Below are positions 49,682 through 61,826 of a DNA stretch of 64,000 nt, one piece after another. The position numbers and the translations under genes were made by a program. Source of the DNA: Guillardia theta CCMP2712. Lineage: Eukaryota; Protista; Cryptophyta. How positions within the stretch are numbered: position 1 is the first letter of the stretch; each line of letters starts with the position of its first letter. Location of the stretch: positions 124,001-188,000 of the forward strand of contig NW_005434635.1 of NCBI RefSeq assembly GCF_000315625.1. The letters run 5' to 3'. The notes beneath the pieces were generated by a model. The model was not told the DNA's origin and made no database searches. It was given only the letters and a program-made list of their open reading frames with translations.

Positions 49682-49824
49682 GGTCCTTGTATGTATTGTG
49701 ATCCTCATCCCCCCTCACTCCCCATCCTTGGTGGAGACCCGCATCCCCCCTTAGACCATAGGGCAGATCGGGGGATGAGGGGCAGGACGAAAGGTCTTCT
49801 ACAGCTAGCCAGTGCCAGTTGGAT

Positions 49825-52800
49825 ATGGCGAGCGGCGGGGAGGTGAAGGTATGTGGGCTGGGGATGAAGGTAGAGCGCGATGGGCACGGGAACATCGTGA
49901 TCCGAGGACTAGCACCAGGAGGTCCGGCGGATGCGAGCAGGAAAGTGAGGGAGGGAGACATCATCTACTCCCTCACCAACAAGAAAGTGCACGTCTTCAA
50001 CAAGACCACCACGCTCGAGTACGTGAAGAAGAAGATCATGGGGATGCCCAAGTCCAAGTGCAGACTTGTCCTCATTCGAAATGGTGAGAAGATCAATGTC
50101 GAGCTGACCCGTGGGGGGTTCGTCATGCCGTCGATGGGCGACTCTTCCACCGTTCAATCTTCTACCTCAGCGCGAAGCCTTCAGTCCAGCCTTTCAAGGC
50201 AGCAGCCAAGTGCACCGACACGAGAAGCGACGGTCACACACAATAGGACTATAACCCATACAGCCTCGAACACGCGTATCCCCGTTGCGTCAACCGTTAC
50301 GCAAGCTACAGTCATACGAGGACTGCCTGTCGATACGTCCCGGAACTCAATGGCACGGAACAAGCCGATCCGAGAGGCCACGAAGGAGGTGCCTTACTGC
50401 GGGATCGGGATCGAGTTTGTCAGGAGCAAGTTTGGGTGCACGGTCGTCTCCGTCAAGGAGGGAAGTGCAGCGGATGCGGTAGGAACGATCGACGTCGGGG
50501 ATTGCTTTCTCAAGGTGGATGGCAAGGACGTCGCAAACATGTCCTTGTCCGACATCCGGAAGCTGCTGCTGGGCCCTGTGGGAACGATGGTGAGGATCAC
50601 CATTCTCCGCAAGAGGTTGAACTGGGCGATGCAAGAGATTTGTCTGTCTCGCTACCCGACGAGGGAGCGTGCCTTCCAGCCGACCATGACCCACAAGATG
50701 GCGACCAAGACAGGCGCCTTACAGGCGTTGCCTGCCGAGAGAGGAAACGGGGATGGAGATCAGATGTCCTCTTCACGCGTCTCTGTCCAACTCGCCAAGA
50801 CCGTGTTGGCCCAGAAGCTCCCAGCACAGGACAAATCCGATGTCGACGAATTGGCGAAGAAGTTTTCTATACGAGCCTCGACGATCTTGTCGAAGCAGCT
50901 TGCTCTGACACAGAGACGCGATCTGGCATCAAAGGCAAAGAACAGAGTAAGCGCTCGGTATATGTCGAAAGCTCCGAAACCAGCTGGATCACCGCCAGAG
51001 CTGTGGAGCAAGACTTCACACCCTTCCAAGGACGGATCGAAGGAATCAGCGCAGACCTCGACTGAGAACTCGACGATAGTAGCGGAAAAGCTGCACAAAG
51101 TTGAACAATTCGAGTCGACTCTTGTTGGTCCCAACAAGGGCACAAAGACGAATTCAGAGGGGAAGGAGGGGAAGCGCCCTGCGGTCAAGGACGTTCCGTT
51201 GAAACATGACGCTGTTAGTCATGACGAAGAATCCATGGTCTTTGAAAGTGGTTTCAACGAAGTTTCGAGAGAAAGTCTATTGAGAAACGATGAGAAAGTA
51301 GCGAGGGAGCTGCAGGAATTTTATACAAAGTTAGACCAAGAATCTGAGAAGGCGGCCGAATCTAAACCAGCGTCAAATGTCGAGCAAAATATCAACGTAC
51401 CAGAATCGAAGATTGTGAGTCAACAAGAAATGCCTAAGTCTCCTGCTGGAGTGGTAGCTGGAGTTGTGAGCGAAGTGGAATCAACCTTGCAAGGCACCGT
51501 TGACAGCTCTGAGGGGCATCGACAATCGAGTGAAGCAGACCAGTCACAGGAGCCGACTGCTCCTGATTTGCTTGACATCCGGTCGCCTGAAGCAGAAGCT
51601 AAGGAGGATACATCTGCCGTCGAAGCAGGTACTCATGCCTTGCAGCATATTTCCACAGCTGATACTCAGCCAGTTTCTGACTGTTGCTTTGTAGGAGTTG
51701 GAGAGGGGGTGGAAGAATCGAAATGGTACCAGTTCGTCGATGATGACACACAACAAGTCTATTATTTCAGTCCCGTTACCGAGGAATCGGTTTGGGAGCT
51801 ACCTCCTGGAGGAATCATCATACCCTATGAGGAGGAGGAGGAGGAGGAGGAGGGGGAGAGCGAAGAGCGTGCGCTCGAAGAAAATCTGTGGGTACGTGAG
51901 CAGCTGGGTGTTCACAAGGGTCGATCTGATCGCTGACGCAGCAAGCCCACACCGAGACCAGTGTCGAGGAGGAGACCTCATCGTCCAGCGATGAGACTGA
52001 TGAGGAGGCGGATGAGAAGGCGGATGAGGAGGAAGCGCCGGCTGCGTTCTCCCTGATGACGCCACACACCGACTCGAACGTCGGCGATGACGAGCTGGGA
52101 ATCCATCTGGGAGACGAAACTTCGCATCCTCCGCTCGCCGAAGTGAAGCCGCTTCCTGAAGTAAGTCTGCTGCTGCCGCCTGCTGAGCTGACTATCCTCC
52201 AAGGGCTGGGAGATCCTGATCGACGATGACAGCGGTTTTGAGTACTATCACAACATGGACACAGGGGAAGTGCAGTGGGAGCACCCGGGGAATGAAAAGA
52301 AGGAGGAGTGCGAGCTCGGAGGTGTGAGTGAGGAGATCGCGCGGAAGTCGCTTGCGATCCTGGGACAACCGGACGAAGAGGATATCTCACATGCGTACAA
52401 GGAGCTGACAGATCTAAAGGTCTTCACAGCAGATATTCATTCATATAATCTTCCCTCTGACCGGCCTCTACCCACCACCACCCCCACCACAAACCTTCCC
52501 GTCCTTATTCCTTCGTCTCATACTCATTCCTACCGTCTCTCCTTTTGTGCCTCTCAACCATCTTGTATTCCCTCACTTCCACTTGCAGGCGTTCATGTCC
52601 AAAATCGTCCTCGGAAATGATTTCTCGGGAGGGACCAACGGTGACAGCCCGGCCCTCACGATCTCGCTCGCCATCACCAACTTGGCCTCTGCGACGTTTG
52701 GCCAGCTCAACCGCCTGCAGGTCGCCGGCAGGAATGCTCGCAGGGTGAGCTGACGCTTCGTGGACAGCCTGTAGGGAAGGCGGTGGAAACCAAGTGGAAG

Positions 52801-54305
52801 AAGGAGATCGAGTGGCTGCTGCTCCCGGTTCAACAGATCGTCGTGCTCGAGCCTGTAGTGAAGGTGAGGACAGGAGGTACGAGCGAGGACTTGTGACCGC
52901 TTCCCTCCGCAGATCCTTCCGGATGGCTCGAGCGTGGAAGTGATGCAGCAGCAAGTCAGGAAGGACATTCGCACCATGCTCCCTCAGCTCCTTGCATGTG
53001 ACTCCACTTTGTTCGAGGTCTGGCTTTTGGCTCCTTCGTCTCCCTCTCCCTTCTCTCCTGACCATCTCTGATCCATCTCTCACGCGTCTCCTCCCCTTGC
53101 ACGCGCTCTCCTCACTGTATCGGTGCAAGATCATGTCGAGATTCTGCGAGGAGGACATCAAGATCTCGTGGAAGAAGAGTCAGCCGGGCCAACAGGTGTG
53201 TTTGCCAGCGGCGAAGGAGGAGGAAGTGACATCATCCGGCAGACAACTGCAACTGGCAGCGACCAATGGTGGGTCGACACCCCCGTCGTCCCCAAACCAC
53301 TTGCGTCCCATCTGGCTGAGAGCCTTCGCTCGTGTATCTACCAGACCAACGAAATCCTATCCAAGGTGAGGAAGGGGGGGGTGAGCAGGCAGCCGCAGCC
53401 TCCTGGTTGCTGTTAAAAACTTTTTCCTGCACACGTGGAGGTCTCATCGTCTCAGTTTCCATCCTCGTGCAGGCGCGAGAGATGAACGTCGATGTGATTT
53501 CTCGGATGAAGGTCCCAACGGTGAACTCGCCGTGCCCTTGCCTCCTCTACGGCTTGACTCCCCTCGTTCCGCAGAACTACTTGAGCTCCCTCCCGGACAA
53601 CGCGGCGCAGGTGACGCGCCCGCTCGCGCACTGCTGGGGTTGTGATGGTACGGAAGATTGTGGGGAAGGAAGTTTCCAAGATGCTGAAGAAGAAGTCGAC
53701 CAAGGACTGCGAGACTTTCCTGTCAAAGTGAGCTCGCGGAGGTCCTCCCCCGCCCTCACGAGGAGCTGCAGGTGTGACATCCTCGACGGCTTGCAAGTAT
53801 CGTCCATGATCGGCCAGTTCCAAGACATCGCGCTGATCTGGGACCAGAAGGCAAGTCTCTCTCGCTCTCTCATGCTCGCTCTCCCCCCTGACGCAGTCTG
53901 GCAGCTGCAGGCGACCCTGAAGAAGAAGGCCGAGACCAAGGTCACCGACATGCTCATGTTTGCCAAGGACGCCAAGGACCTCGAGAGAGGGAGGAACAAC
54001 GCCCTCCACCTCGCTCAGGTGCGTCAGAGCAGCTGCTCTCTCGAGTCCTCATGCCAGCCTCAGATCCTCCGGCTCGCGCATCCCGAGGCTCCGCAGACAC
54101 GGCTGGAAACCTCTCAGATCAAGGAGAACCTCGACGTGAACCTTGTGCTCTCGCCTCCCCACACGTTGTGATCCTCCTTGTCCAGGTCGGTCTCTCTGCC
54201 CTAGAGGCCCTCAGCCGCGTCTTGGAAGGAAGAGCCTCTGCCATCTACGGCCATCTCAAGAGGATCTGCCAGCAAGCAGACGCTCCTCACCTGCTCAGTC
54301 AGTGA
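49825..54305 (+). CDS. PDZ-PDZ-WW-WW-PRONE (RopGEF-type) protein, multi-exon
   Basis: PDZ: CGLGMKV...GGPAD and CGIGIEF...GSAAD..IDVGD..KVDG. WW: WYQF..YYF..SVWELP and GWEIL..YYHN.TGEVQWEHP. PRONE: KIVLGNDFSGG..ALTISLAITNL..FGQL, WKKEIEWLL, WWVDTPVVP, DVGLSALEALSRVLE. Confidence 0.85.
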
Positions 54306-54479
54306 TAACGTCTGTAATCTACTTTTGTACGATAAAGTCGCATGTACACTTAACCTTGGACGGCGGGCAGTTGACTGGAGTCCGGGTGTGACCGCTACCC
54401 CGCATTCTCAAGCGTGACTTCAATATCGCCGCACTGCGGAATGTCCGGTCGGATCACAAGTCAAGTTTACGCTGCATTG

Positions 54480-54720
54480 GCAGCGGGGCGCCGGCGCCGT
54501 CCTCCCCCCCCGATCCTGCCGGTGCATTCAATTATTGCACTGTGACTGTACGGTCACATTCACGCGGGCGCAGTGGGCGCACGGCACTGCGGCACGCCGG
54601 GCCGGGCCGGGCCGGGCCGGGCCGGGCCGGGCCGCCCTCCCCCCGGGGACCGGCCGGTGGCGTTCGGCGCCGGAATCGCCGGTCACTGCAGTGCACGGAG
54701 TCCAAGCGGCCCGTCGGGAA
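54480..54720. repeat. GC-rich palindromic island including (GGCCG)n
   Basis: About 6 GCCGG units at about 54596-54633. Adjacent to the retroelement 3' end. Confidence 0.65.
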
Positions 54721-57324: not shown

Positions 57325-58408
57325 CTAAAGGCAGCCATGTAACAAGGTTCCGACATTCAAGTACAACTTGATACCTTCGTCTTTGTGCATGGAATGCCCG
57401 CCTTTCGCAACCCACACGATCTTGAATCCCTGCCCGCGTTCAAGCTTCAGGAATGATGCACGTGCAAGCTGCACGACTCTTACGCTCTGTTCTAGCAGAG
57501 TTGCAGAAGAAAATCTGCCAAAGTTCTTCTCCCCATACATCACCATCATTGGTAATCCCCCATCCTTTGAACACAAGGCATCAGAATGTTGATCACGCAC
57601 AGCTCGTGTTTCTCCCATTGTTTACCTTCAGAGCCTTTATTCTGGGCAAAAGTTCCCCTGAGCAGGATATCTCCACTAAATCTTTGGAGCTTGCATACCT
57701 GATAAATGGAATCACCTTTAATTGACAAAATTATGCTTGGCTTCTTTTCCAGCATGATTCTTACTCACATTGCAAAGTCCATCGCTTCTTTTTCGTCGGA
57801 ATGAGGGCTAACTTTAGGACAGCCTTTTTCAAGAATCTTTTTTGAGCCAAAACAATCATCTTCGTTGATGTTGCCCTCCTTCCGAAACGAGATCAGTAAA
57901 GGATTGATTCCGAGATACTTACTTCATATATCAAACCATTTAAAGTGATGTCCCGATTTTCACGAATGATCTTTTCACAGAGTTCGATAGCAATAGGCCC
58001 ACCCAGTGAGTGGCCAATGATGAATACATTCTTGACTCCTTGCTCCGACAAAATCTGGTGAATGGAATCTGCCTGTGACTTCATGGTATATGGCTCGAAA
58101 TCGAGAGGCTTACAACTCATCCCATGACCTGCGAGGTCCGGAATGATCCAATTTACTTCATCCAGTAGTCTCTGGGAGGGCAAGCACGTGCTGGAATCGG
58201 ATCCCAGACCATGAATGAACAGCGCATGATTTCTCGAAGCCATGTTTCCGAGCTTGCGGTAATGCATGTTGCCAAATCTTGTACTGACATTTTGATCAAG
58301 AGACGCCTTGGTAGGTTGTCGCAAGACGGAGCGCCATGAGAAAGCACGTGGCAGGCTCAGCAGCAGATACGCCCATCCCCAACCCCGCACAGCAAGCTTG
58401 TTGAGCAT
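57325..58408 (-). CDS. Alpha/beta hydrolase, multi-exon
   Basis: LFIHGLG, PDLAGHG, IIGHSLGG nucleophile elbow, and GGHSMH (catalytic His). Confidence 0.85.
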
Positions 58409-58754
58409 TTCGTTCGACCCCAACCCCCCCTAATTCATCACCCCATAAAACTATATTTCATGTAGGGGTGGAGTGTGAGGGTGGTGGTGGTGAGGTTTGA
58501 TGTGAGGAGTCAGCCCGGCCCAGAGCAATGCGAGCGAAGGCGGGAGAGGATGGGGCAGGAGGGACGAAGAGAGAGTAGAGGCGAGCAGCATCAGGCAAGG
58601 AAGTGATCGGAGAGCTACACGAGAGTGAGCAGGAGAAGTGGGAGATCTGAGGAAAACAGTGAAGTGACAGACTCGGACCTGGGGAGCGGATCAGCAAACA
58701 AAAGAACCGGCGACAAGGGACAAGCAGCTGCTGTGTTGATCACAAGGGCAAGAC

Positions 58755-59402
58755 ATGGCAAGGGCATACTTGTTGTCCTGCTTCCTCTGCCTTCACATGC
58801 TCTCAACATCGGAAGGGAGATGGCAGTGCGTGTGGGATAGCGAGATGGTCAACATCCACTGTGAGCCCGCATCAAATCAGAGCTGCATCGCCACAGACGA
58901 GCAGCGATGCTGCCAGAAGCATGAAAATGGCGTTCTGAGAGTTTCCTGCTGCCCTTGTCCGCCTGCCACGTACGAGAAGCGAACTTCTGGCAGCTCCTAC
59001 GGTGTCTGCGTTTCCTGTCCTGCAGGGAAGTTTTCAAGCGAAGGAGGAGAGTGCTTTGCATGCGACTGGGGCAAGTACAGCTCTGCAGGAGCGACAGCAT
59101 GTACAAACTGTGAGTCAGGGAAGTTCAGATTCTGGATGGGGGGAACGACATGCAATGACTGTCCCGTAGGGAAGTTTGGATTACAGACTGGAGCAAGGTG
59201 GCCAGATGTTTGCGTGAACTGCAGGCCAGGAACGTACTCTAACGCCAGCGGCTCTACCTCTTGTGCGGAGTGCGACGCGGGAAAGTTCAGCACAACCCCT
59301 GGTGCTGCGAGTATCGACACATGCTCTTTGTGCCCAGTTGGAAAAACCAATTATGAGAAAGGTTCCATTTCTTGCTCAGTTCCTCTGAGCATTTCTTATT
59401 GA
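58755..59402 (+). CDS. Secreted cysteine-rich protein with GCC2/GCC3 (ephrin-receptor-like) repeats
   Basis: Signal peptide. Repeated CPAGKFS / CDWGKYS / CESGKF / CPVGKF / CRPGTYS units. Confidence 0.8.
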   Translation: MARAYLLSCFLCLHMLSTSEGRWQCVWDSEMVNIHCEPASNQSCIATDEQRCCQKHENGVLRVSCCPCPPATYEKRTSGSSYGVCVSCPAGKFSSEGGECFACDWGKYSSAGATACTNCESGKFRFWMGGTTCNDCPVGKFGLQTGARWPDVCVNCRPGTYSNASGSTSCAECDAGKFSTTPGAASIDTCSLCPVGKTNYEKGSISCSVPLSISY

Positions 59403-59491: not shown

Positions 59492-61826
59492 TTACGCTGT
59501 CCCCCTGATCTTTGCCACTGCTTCACGCACCTGTAGGAAAACAGCTGTCAGTGTCGCTTCACCATCACACTGGCGATGATAGCATACCTGACTGAAGGTC
59601 GGCCTTGCCGAAGGGTTGTTGTCCCAGCAGCGTTGAATGAGGGCCGAGATCCCCGGGGGACAGGAAGGCGAGATGGGCGGGCCTGTGAAATGATAAGGAG
59701 GGGAGGATGATCGCGTGACGTGTCGGTCACTCACGGATATGGCGATGGAAGACGTTCTTGCAGATACCCATCTGATCGAGTCTTGTCTCCATGTAGGGAG
59801 TGGAGCAATGGAAGAGCTCCCAGAGCAAGATGGCGTAACTGAAAACGTCGACTGTCCTGTCGTACTCCTTGGGCATGCCCAGGAGGTTTGAAATGACCTC
59901 AGGTGCCATCCACTGAGGAGTGCCACAGGCATCTGTTGCCAGAGGCGCTGGAGTACACATCCCAAAGTCAGCAACCTTAGCAACGAGATCCTTGGAAAGG
60001 AAAACGTTCCTGAGAGAATCTCAGCGAGAATTGAAAAGAGCACAAGGGACGTACAGGGACTTGATGTCGCGATGCATGTACCCCAGCGAATGGATCACCT
60101 CGAACCCTGTAGCACACTCTTCCGCGAGTCTGAGCGAGGTGGCAGTGTCGAACTTCTTCCTTCCCTTGCTGTAGAAGTCATAGATAGATCCGAGATCGCA
60201 AAGCTCTGTCAAAATCAAGATCCCGCCATCTTCGAGTGTTGTCTTCGCGCCCAGCAGATAGTGACAATTTGGATGGTCAAGCTTGAGGAAGAAGTCAACT
60301 TCATCGATGGTTTCCTGAACTGTCCCGGCATCCGGGGCTCCAATGAGTGTCTTTCCTGCACATGACATTCCATCATAGGTTCCAAGGTGGACAGTTCCCT
60401 GGCCTCCCTGGCCAAGAAGCTTGCCCTTGGAGAACTTGGCTGGCACAACATGGTGAATACGAGCGGGCCTGGCATCCTTCTTTGCCACTGGAATCGACAC
60501 CAAATTCGGCTGAACAACTCGCTTTTCTGGATGATAGTTGTCGGGATTATACATGCCATCGGGACATGTAAGCGCATATAAGAACTTCATGAATCTCACT
60601 ACATCCAGCGCATCTCGTCCTTGAGTTGCCGAACTCTTGTATGAGTTGCTGGCGAACAAGGATGGAACTCTGTCTGGGATAACTCCAAAAAGGTCTCGGC
60701 AAAAGTTTTGAACCTCATCAAGCGTGAGGCGAAGGTTCTTGTCCGTGTCGTACTTGCGATAGAACGAATGAATGTCAATAAATGCTTTCTTGACCTTCTG
60801 GGCGCCAGTGGTATCCTCCACAAGGTCATGATAGGATCCATTCTGAGTCATCATGAAAGAAAGATATACGAACTCGTAGAAATCCAACGAGCCAGAGCCA
60901 TCCAGGTCTACTTGAGAATATGCGTACTCCAGCCTCGAAAGGATGTTGACCTTCTCCTGGGCAGTTCGAGCAGCCGGAAAGCCTCGAGTGATCTCATCGT
61001 AATCAACAACATTGTCCTTGTTGGTATCGAAATGCTTGAAATCCTGCTCCAGAACCTTGTAGGCTTCGCTGAGCTCCTTCCAGAAGGCGCTGCTCTCACC
61101 CACATTTCCGCTCGAAAAGCTTCTGGTAAGCTTTAGGCCTGTTCTTGAGTAGGTGCCCTTCAACGCAGATCCCGGGTATTTGCACATGACGTCGTACAGC
61201 AAGTACATGAACTTGGGAAAGCTGAGCTCCGAAGTCTGCATGCAGAGTCATCATTCTCGAAACAAACACAACGATCGGAGCATGACAAAGGGAACAAGAA
61301 CGAAGGCTACCTGTCGTTGGTTCTCGGGGTAGACGAAATCAACGACGGTTTTGTACACTCCCGACTGAACGGCAACAGGAATATGATCCGTGAAGAACGC
61401 AGTGAGCTCGTTGATGTTCAAAGTCCTGTTCCGATCGACATCGTACTTGATCATGGCCTGCTCCATCAGCATGAATGCCTTGGAAACGATGTGTGCGTTC
61501 TGTTGATTTCGGAAGAAGCATGAATAATTTCCTTGATCTACCCACAGATATAACAAACACAAAAATTCAGAGAAGTCAAGGGTTCCGTTTCCATCCAAGT
61601 CCACTCTCTTGAACAAGGCTTGCAGCTTTTCGGATTCCACGAAGCCCGCCATGGCAAGCTTTCTCTCCAACTCGAAGTACATGAGCGTTTCCGCTTCATC
61701 TGCATCGTACGAGTGGAAGCGAAGCTCTAGCAGTTTGAAAGCCTCTAGCAACAAGGATGCGAGAGTGTTGTCCTTGGGATTTGCGACGTACTCATCGTTC
61801 GGTATGTATTGATGCCACTTCCACAT
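59492..61826 (-). CDS. Multi-EF-hand plus TKL-group protein kinase (5' end may extend further)
   Basis: EF loops DLDGNGTLDFSE, DVDRNRTLNINE, DTNKDNVVDYDE, DLDGSGSLDFYE and DTDKNLRLTLDE. Kinase GQGGQG, HRDIKSLN, DFG, GTPQWMAPE, DVFSYAILLWE and CW..NPSARP. Confidence 0.88.

Follow-up and report, generated by a model that had tools for sequence, protein, structure and literature searches.

PRONE, the nucleotide exchange domain of plant RopGEFs, is currently regarded as a hallmark of Archaeplastida. A 2025 review places it nowhere outside this group (PMC12445832), and a 2024 review describes it as plant-specific, with "PRONE-like proteins" in other Archaeplastida (PMC11194304); as relayed in the latter, Elias (2008) put the domain forward as a possible synapomorphy of Archaeplastida. 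Within the group, PRONE has been reported in red algae (PMC12445832). Outside it, the main text of a survey by Fort and Blangy (2017) credits Emiliania huxleyi, a haptophyte with a red-derived plastid, with two Rac proteins, four Dbl-like factors, one RopGEF and no DOCK (PMC5499878). PRONE outside Archaeplastida is therefore not wholly new. Here, we analyzed a 64,000-nucleotide stretch of nuclear DNA from the cryptophyte Guillardia theta CCMP2712 (contig NW_005434635.1, positions 124,001 to 188,000; hereafter the window). A first-pass annotation, made from the letters alone, had noticed at window positions 49825-54305 a PRONE domain fused to two PDZ and two WW domains, and had described PRONE as typical of plants and Archaeplastida, a view that agrees with the current literature except for the Emiliania protein.

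The observation is confirmed, and the interpretation attached to it is supported. We document the structure and expression of this gene and the identities of its domains, and show that its entire architecture is conserved in other marine eukaryotes. Taken together, the evidence makes it highly probable that one spliced, polyadenylated nuclear gene yields a cytosolic protein of 1165 residues with the layout PDZ-PDZ-linker-WW-WW-PRONE, a putative locally docked Rac exchange factor. Plant RopGEFs (PF03759; Arabidopsis RopGEF8, PDB 2ntx/2nty) share with it a homologous full-length PRONE domain with the conserved blocks in the same order, and the Rac/ROP-like GTPase that is the likely substrate is also present in Guillardia theta. 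Unlike them, the Guillardia theta protein adds an N-terminal PDZ-PDZ-WW-WW array, whereas the five plant and green-algal proteins that were scanned or aligned contain PRONE only, so that the first-pass statement that plant RopGEFs lack PDZ and WW domains holds for this sample. It thus departs from the plant-type layout, in which PRONE is flanked by variable N- and C-terminal regions and no other domains, and has no counterpart of the C-terminal regulatory region. Furthermore, its host lies outside Archaeplastida, and its PRONE occupies a separate long branch, with 27-30% identity in end-to-end alignments to its counterparts in Arabidopsis, Theobroma, Pteridium and the prasinophyte Cymbomonas.

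Two further systems invite comparison. The combination of Rac, Dbl-type factors and a PRONE-type factor outside Archaeplastida, as given for Emiliania huxleyi in the main text of PMC5499878, is mirrored by the Guillardia theta set; that main text does not describe the domain architecture of the Emiliania RopGEF. Animal PDZ-RhoGEF and LARG (ARHGEF11/12) also place a PDZ docking module before a Rho-family exchange domain. However, their catalytic unit is a DH-PH pair of the Dbl type, unrelated to PRONE, and they contain an RGS domain and no WW domain; PMC5499878 gives the layout as PDZ/RGS/DH/PH. We regard this likeness as analogy rather than homology.

Results

Gene structure and expression

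The coding region occupies 16 exons on the forward strand of the nuclear genome, consistent with the algal host type named by the first-pass annotation, and its spliced open reading frame (ORF) comprises 3498 nucleotides (nt), that is, 1165 codons and a stop, without any internal stop. The start codon was assigned to the ATG at 49825, the first in-frame ATG after a stop. Exon borders were derived by eye from the three forward frames and then compared with transcript contigs. Transcript data from four runs were aligned to 49700-54400; three of them (X1, X3 and X4), belonging to three different studies, gave spliced contigs, in which all 15 predicted introns are skipped exactly. The introns measure, from 1 to 15, 66, 50, 43, 169, 47, 49, 112, 47, 107, 54, 46, 44, 54, 45 and 50 nt. 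The expectation that they would be of the GT-AG type stood for 14 of the 15; the sole GC-AG intron is intron 13, whose splice is confirmed by contigs in the three runs, the joint lying at 53848/53903 with 2 nt of slack. The contig of run X1 carries an A-run behind 54353, so the mRNA ends about 48 nt past the stop codon, and raw RNA sequencing reads from X19 accumulate at 53782-54400. At 54222, in the last PRONE exon, three of six raw reads of run X19 show G in place of T, a change absent from the contigs of the other runs and probably a strain or allele difference.

Domain content

Searches against Pfam and other databases were made on single exons; the joined translation served for the frame check, alignment, tree and local tblastn. 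The profiles that the first-pass annotation had named for verification (PF03759, PF00595 and PF00397) all matched when run exon by exon, with only WW1 falling short of its curated cut-off, and these matches, the stop-free spliced ORF and the contig joints bear out two PDZ domains, two WW domains and PRONE in a single frame. Both PDZ copies in exon 1 exceed the cut-off (56.8-58 bits with PF00595 and PF17820), as does WW2 in exon 4, with 41.4 bits against a PF00397 cut-off of 26.9 bits. The orthologous WW1 domains of two marine relatives also exceed it (36 bits in L004 and 28.8 bits in L007).

For PRONE, for which the curated cut-off is 27 bits, exon 5 scores above this value on its own, and exons 6, 7 and 16 add lower-scoring matches (Table 1). 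These exon matches are colinear and extend over positions 10-356 of the 361 in the hidden Markov model (HMM), amounting to a complete domain with its three subdomains in order; together with the end-to-end alignment, this substantiates the claim that all three PRONE subdomains are present. Neighboring matches in one frame reached 59.5 bits in a six-frame genome scan, and exon 5 matches the sequence from which the Arabidopsis RopGEF8 crystal structure was solved (2ntx, E 1e-6). The middle exons are too short to score alone; the exon translations align from end to end with plant and algal PRONE. The region assigned to PRONE by the first-pass annotation (52380-54305) holds as a whole, with its start corrected to approximately 52402, at the end of the WW2 exon. 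Among the 83 positions invariant in five green PRONEs, 56 are kept, including the second Trp (W955) of the Trp-Trp motif. Only about a dozen residues follow the domain. No signal peptide or transmembrane stretch was found at the N-terminus, where PDZ1 begins at about residue 10, and Pfam gave no DH or PH match in any exon of the gene. The six-frame scan of the genome (87.1 Mb in 669 contigs) returned no second PRONE locus.

Transcript continuity and the case for a single gene

Given that the transcript contigs of all three runs split into two pieces at 51822-51866, the possibility of two adjacent genes or transcripts was considered, one encoding PDZ-PDZ-WW1 and the other WW2-PRONE, in which case the fusion would be an artefact of reading one frame across both. 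One contig indeed extends from PDZ1 through WW1 only as far as 51821, and P0001, a transcript-derived protein of Hanusia phi, ends after WW1. However, the break coincides with a 45-nt GAG trinucleotide repeat within one exon, at which short-word assemblers stop; it is the sole gap in transcript continuity, it was flagged as a place where records are cut, and the reading frame is open across it. The downstream contig begins inside exon 2: in each of the three runs it leads from the last 24 nt of exon 2, spliced to exon 3, through exon 4 with WW2 and all PRONE exons to the 3' end. Since it runs unbroken from WW2 through PRONE, the WW2-PRONE fusion is directly shown. The depths of the two contigs are similar within each run (57.9 and 50.1; 361 and 236; 11.7 and 14.8), and no pile-up of transcript starts or ends is reported in the transcript data.

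The Hanusia protein itself argues against a boundary after WW1, as it extends from PDZ1 through its acidic tract into intron 2, which is retained, and finishes with the three residues that begin Guillardia theta exon 3. The 22 residues that 51629-51694 would encode are missing from it, in support of intron 1. In relatives with uninterrupted ORFs (P0003, P0005 and P0009), the PRONE match starts at HMM positions 1-4, and the residues there are homologous to the last ones of exon 4, which places the beginning of PRONE in the same exon as WW2. The colinear five-domain order is also kept in the marine contigs L007 and L039. We therefore consider two separate genes very improbable.

Conservation of the architecture

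A profile-free search with exon 5 against 1.84 billion representatives returned 20 proteins. After a near-identical fragment (P0002), the closest eight or so are marine metagenome or metatranscriptome products with 63-73% identity in the PRONE core exon. The closest relatives (P0009, P0010, P0003 and P0005; loci L004, L007, L008, L039 and L040) show 35-42% identity over the whole PRONE domain; they are annotated only as "hypothetical protein", and their gene calls are fragmented, prokaryote-style ORFs. Among these closest products, a WW domain adjoins PRONE wherever the sequence is long enough to show it. The RopGEFs of plants and Cymbomonas rank lower in this search and contain PRONE only.

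The contigs L007 and L008 (65% GC) carry PDZ, WW and WW-PRONE ORFs on one strand, colinear with residues 11-284 and 612-1155 of the Guillardia theta protein in local tblastn. Likewise, contig L039 (56% GC) carries a colinear PDZ-PDZ-WW-WW-PRONE series on one strand, with 55-60% identity in PDZ1 and 41% in PRONE. L004 belongs to the same lineage, its upstream part being cut off by the contig end, and P0009 (L040) is cut at its N-terminus. As the five-domain order recurs in divergent lineages, the architecture is conserved, which argues for function. The layout is shared with other marine eukaryotes and is no oddity of Guillardia.

In a small tree, the PRONEs of Guillardia, P0009 and P0010 group together, and a long branch with full support divides them from seven sequences of Viridiplantae, including Cymbomonas; the tree was built without red algae or glaucophytes and carries no signal on the donor. 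A word search with exon 1 returned only a partial Hanusia phi protein, 64% identical to this exon. Word searches with P0009 and P0010, in which low-complexity words filled the candidate list, yielded hardly any named relatives, if any, and no red-algal, glaucophyte or haptophyte PRONE, and look-ups in the ESM Atlas returned streptophyte PRONE clusters only. Additionally, the word searches, two of which covered the 1165-residue length, found no Guillardia theta protein model for this locus; public annotation may omit or split the gene.

The Rac pathway in Guillardia theta

A Ras-family profile scan combined with a motif filter identified one Rac-like GTPase locus (C272:4011-4520, reverse strand; locus L014), and no other was found in the genome. 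Both of its switch regions, I and II, are of the Rho type, and its main exon scores 175 bits against human Rac1, with an ungapped alignment over 115 of 116 residues. When the DNA was searched with a degenerate pattern for switch II of Rho proteins, there was no match, because an intron splits the motif in this gene. At least two clear loci for Dbl-type RhoGEFs were found, with DH matches on contigs other than that of the PRONE gene, together with at least six RhoGAP matches. The profile of DOCK DHR-2 lobe A matched nothing in the genome, nor did it match in the control genomes. With a Rac-like gene in the genome, the first-pass proposal of a scaffold-type Rho exchange factor built on PRONE is a reasonable one.

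Discussion

The protein opens with a pair of PDZ domains; a long disordered linker then leads to a pair of WW domains and a complete PRONE domain, behind which hardly any tail remains. PDZ domains recognize C-terminal peptides of proteins in membranes or scaffolds, WW domains recognize proline-rich motifs, and the C-terminal region of plant RopGEFs serves autoinhibition. By analogy with plant RopGEFs and their ROP substrates, PRONE would catalyze GDP/GTP exchange on the organism's own Rac-like GTPase, while the PDZ and WW domains would dock the exchanger onto membrane or cortical partners, such that Rac would be switched on locally. The N-terminal modules would then substitute for two features of plant RopGEFs, their contacts with receptor kinases and their autoinhibitory C-terminal region; with so short a tail behind PRONE, autoinhibition from the C-terminus, as in plants, is unlikely.

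Several points weigh against a single, docked Rac exchange factor. The GAG repeat is crossed by no single assembled contig or read in Guillardia theta, and WW1, at 25.3 bits (E 1.6e-5), lies slightly below the cut-off. Moreover, 27 of the 83 green-invariant PRONE positions are changed, and because of these changes activity or specificity may differ from those of green PRONEs. Exchange activity and the PDZ and WW ligands are predicted from knowledge of the families. The same substitutions, along with the low identity to plant PRONE and the long branch separating the Guillardia clade from green PRONEs, would also fit a diverged domain that is weak or retargeted, so that the protein would act as a scaffold binding Rac without activating it, or would serve another small GTPase, with the Dbl-type factors of the genome available for Rac. 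However, the domain is complete, with the conserved motifs of its three subdomains in colinear order, the identity retained among divergent marine lineages points to selection on it, and both PRONE and the Rac-like GTPase are represented by a sole locus found in the genome. Loss or redirection of the exchange function is thus improbable, and a Rac exchange factor remains our preferred interpretation.

The origin of the gene is less certain. It may tentatively be traced to the red-algal endosymbiont, from which it would have passed into the cryptophyte nucleus, with the PDZ and WW modules added later or already present; we hold this to be somewhat short of an even chance. The reports of PRONE in red algae (PMC12445832) and, in the main text of the 2017 survey, in Emiliania with its red-derived plastid (PMC5499878) are consistent with such a transfer, as is the distance of the Guillardia clade from green PRONEs, the prasinophyte sequence among them. 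However, the tree holds no red-algal sequence, the protein has neither a targeting signal nor a plastid role, and the data are explained equally well by common descent of Cryptista and Archaeplastida or by lateral transfer between algae.

In a full-text literature search, we found no mention of PRONE in cryptophytes or Guillardia, or of a PDZ/WW-PRONE architecture; an earlier mention is possible. It is nearly an even bet that the PDZ-PDZ-WW-WW-PRONE proteins constitute a conserved family of Rho exchange factors that has so far gone undescribed, with members among cryptophytes and one or more other GC-rich lineages of marine algae, perhaps haptophytes; as a guess, L007 and L008 could be haptophyte contigs. 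Should this be correct, PRONE would not be an invention of Archaeplastida alone: either it would be older than the divergence of Cryptista from Archaeplastida, or it would have spread along with red-type plastids. The version with docking modules may in that case match the stand-alone plant version in age.

PRONE thus occurs beyond plants and red algae, and it does not always stand alone. An expressed, conserved cryptophyte PRONE weakens the standing of the domain as a shared derived character of Archaeplastida, and the gene offers a marker for weighing a Cryptista-Archaeplastida relationship against gene flow from red-algal endosymbionts. The architecture also suggests that PDZ and WW docking can connect the PRONE module with upstream signals, a route to local Rac activation that parallels animal PDZ-RhoGEFs and is absent from every plant or green-algal PRONE protein scanned.

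Features of the locus and its surroundings

Table 1. Features of the PDZ-PDZ-WW-WW-PRONE gene in window coordinates (aa, amino acids; UTR, untranslated region)
Feature	Position	Strand	Evidence
Whole coding region, PDZ-PDZ-WW-WW-PRONE	49825..54305	+	Stop-free spliced ORF; all joints in contigs of 3 studies
Exon 1: start codon, PDZ1, PDZ2, long low-complexity linker	49825..51628	+	Contigs cover 49846-51626; Pfam PDZ, 2 stretches
PDZ domain 1, approximate limits, aa 10-102	49852..50130	+	Pfam PDZ stretch; 55-60% identity to L039 PDZ ORFs
PDZ domain 2, aa 193-263	50401..50613	+	PF00595 56.8 bits, PF17820 58 bits
Exon 2: WW1 and acidic tract	51695..51891	+	Joints 51628/51695, 51891/51942
WW domain 1	51721..51804	+	PF00397 25.3 bits, E 1.6e-5; orthologous WW 28.8-36 bits in L004/L007
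GAG repeat (poly-Glu), 45 nt, in exon 2; transcript contigs break here	51822..51866	+	Contig 1 end 51821, contig 2 start ~51867
Exon 3: acidic linker	51942..52160	+	Contig joints
Exon 4: WW2 (52204-52287) and first PRONE residues (~52402-52419)	52204..52419	+	PF00397 41.4 bits; alignment with relatives
Exon 5: PRONE subdomain 1 core	52589..52720	+	PF03759 41.7 bits, HMM 10-51; PDB 2ntx RopGEF8, E 1e-6
Exon 6: PRONE	52768..52863	+	PF03759 16.2 bits, HMM 55-81
Exon 7: PRONE	52913..53017	+	PF03759 20.3 bits, HMM 86-118
Exon 8: PRONE, variable stretch	53130..53195	+	Contig joints; alignment
Exon 9: PRONE, Trp-Trp motif	53243..53365	+	Alignment; second Trp (W955) invariant in all rows
Exon 10: PRONE	53473..53520	+	Contig joints; alignment
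Exon 11: PRONE	53575..53610	+	Contig joints; alignment
Exon 12: PRONE, ends in phase 2	53657..53727	+	Contig joints; frame check; alignment
Exon 13: PRONE	53772..53850	+	Contig joints; alignment
Intron 13, GC-AG, 54 nt	53851..53904	+	Contig joint; boundary letters GCAAGT...GGCAG
Exon 14: PRONE	53905..54018	+	Contig joints; alignment
Exon 15: PRONE subdomain 3	54064..54135	+	Contig joints; alignment
Exon 16: PRONE end (to ~54278), tail of about a dozen residues, TGA 54303-54305	54186..54305	+	PF03759 13.4 bits, HMM 326-356
3' UTR, ~48 nt, up to poly(A) addition site	54306..54353	+	Run X1 contig A-run; X19 reads

In the marine contigs L004 (4073-12290, reverse strand) and L039 (5261-11992, reverse strand), a giant ORF in convergent orientation comes after the PRONE gene and encodes about 4775 residues, with Ig domains like those of HYDIN/CFAP65; this neighbor has no counterpart beside the Guillardia theta gene within the window. 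The ORFs surrounding the latter encode unrelated domains or none and show no evident link to it. About 250 nt past the poly(A) site, at 54598-54637, approximately eight copies of GGGCC lie in a GC-rich stretch without a recognized ORF. Farther downstream are a gene with an alpha/beta-hydrolase fold (57893-58423, reverse strand), one with ephrin-receptor-like cysteine-rich repeats (58755-59402, forward strand), and one in which an EF-hand pair is joined to a protein kinase domain (60021-61241, reverse strand).

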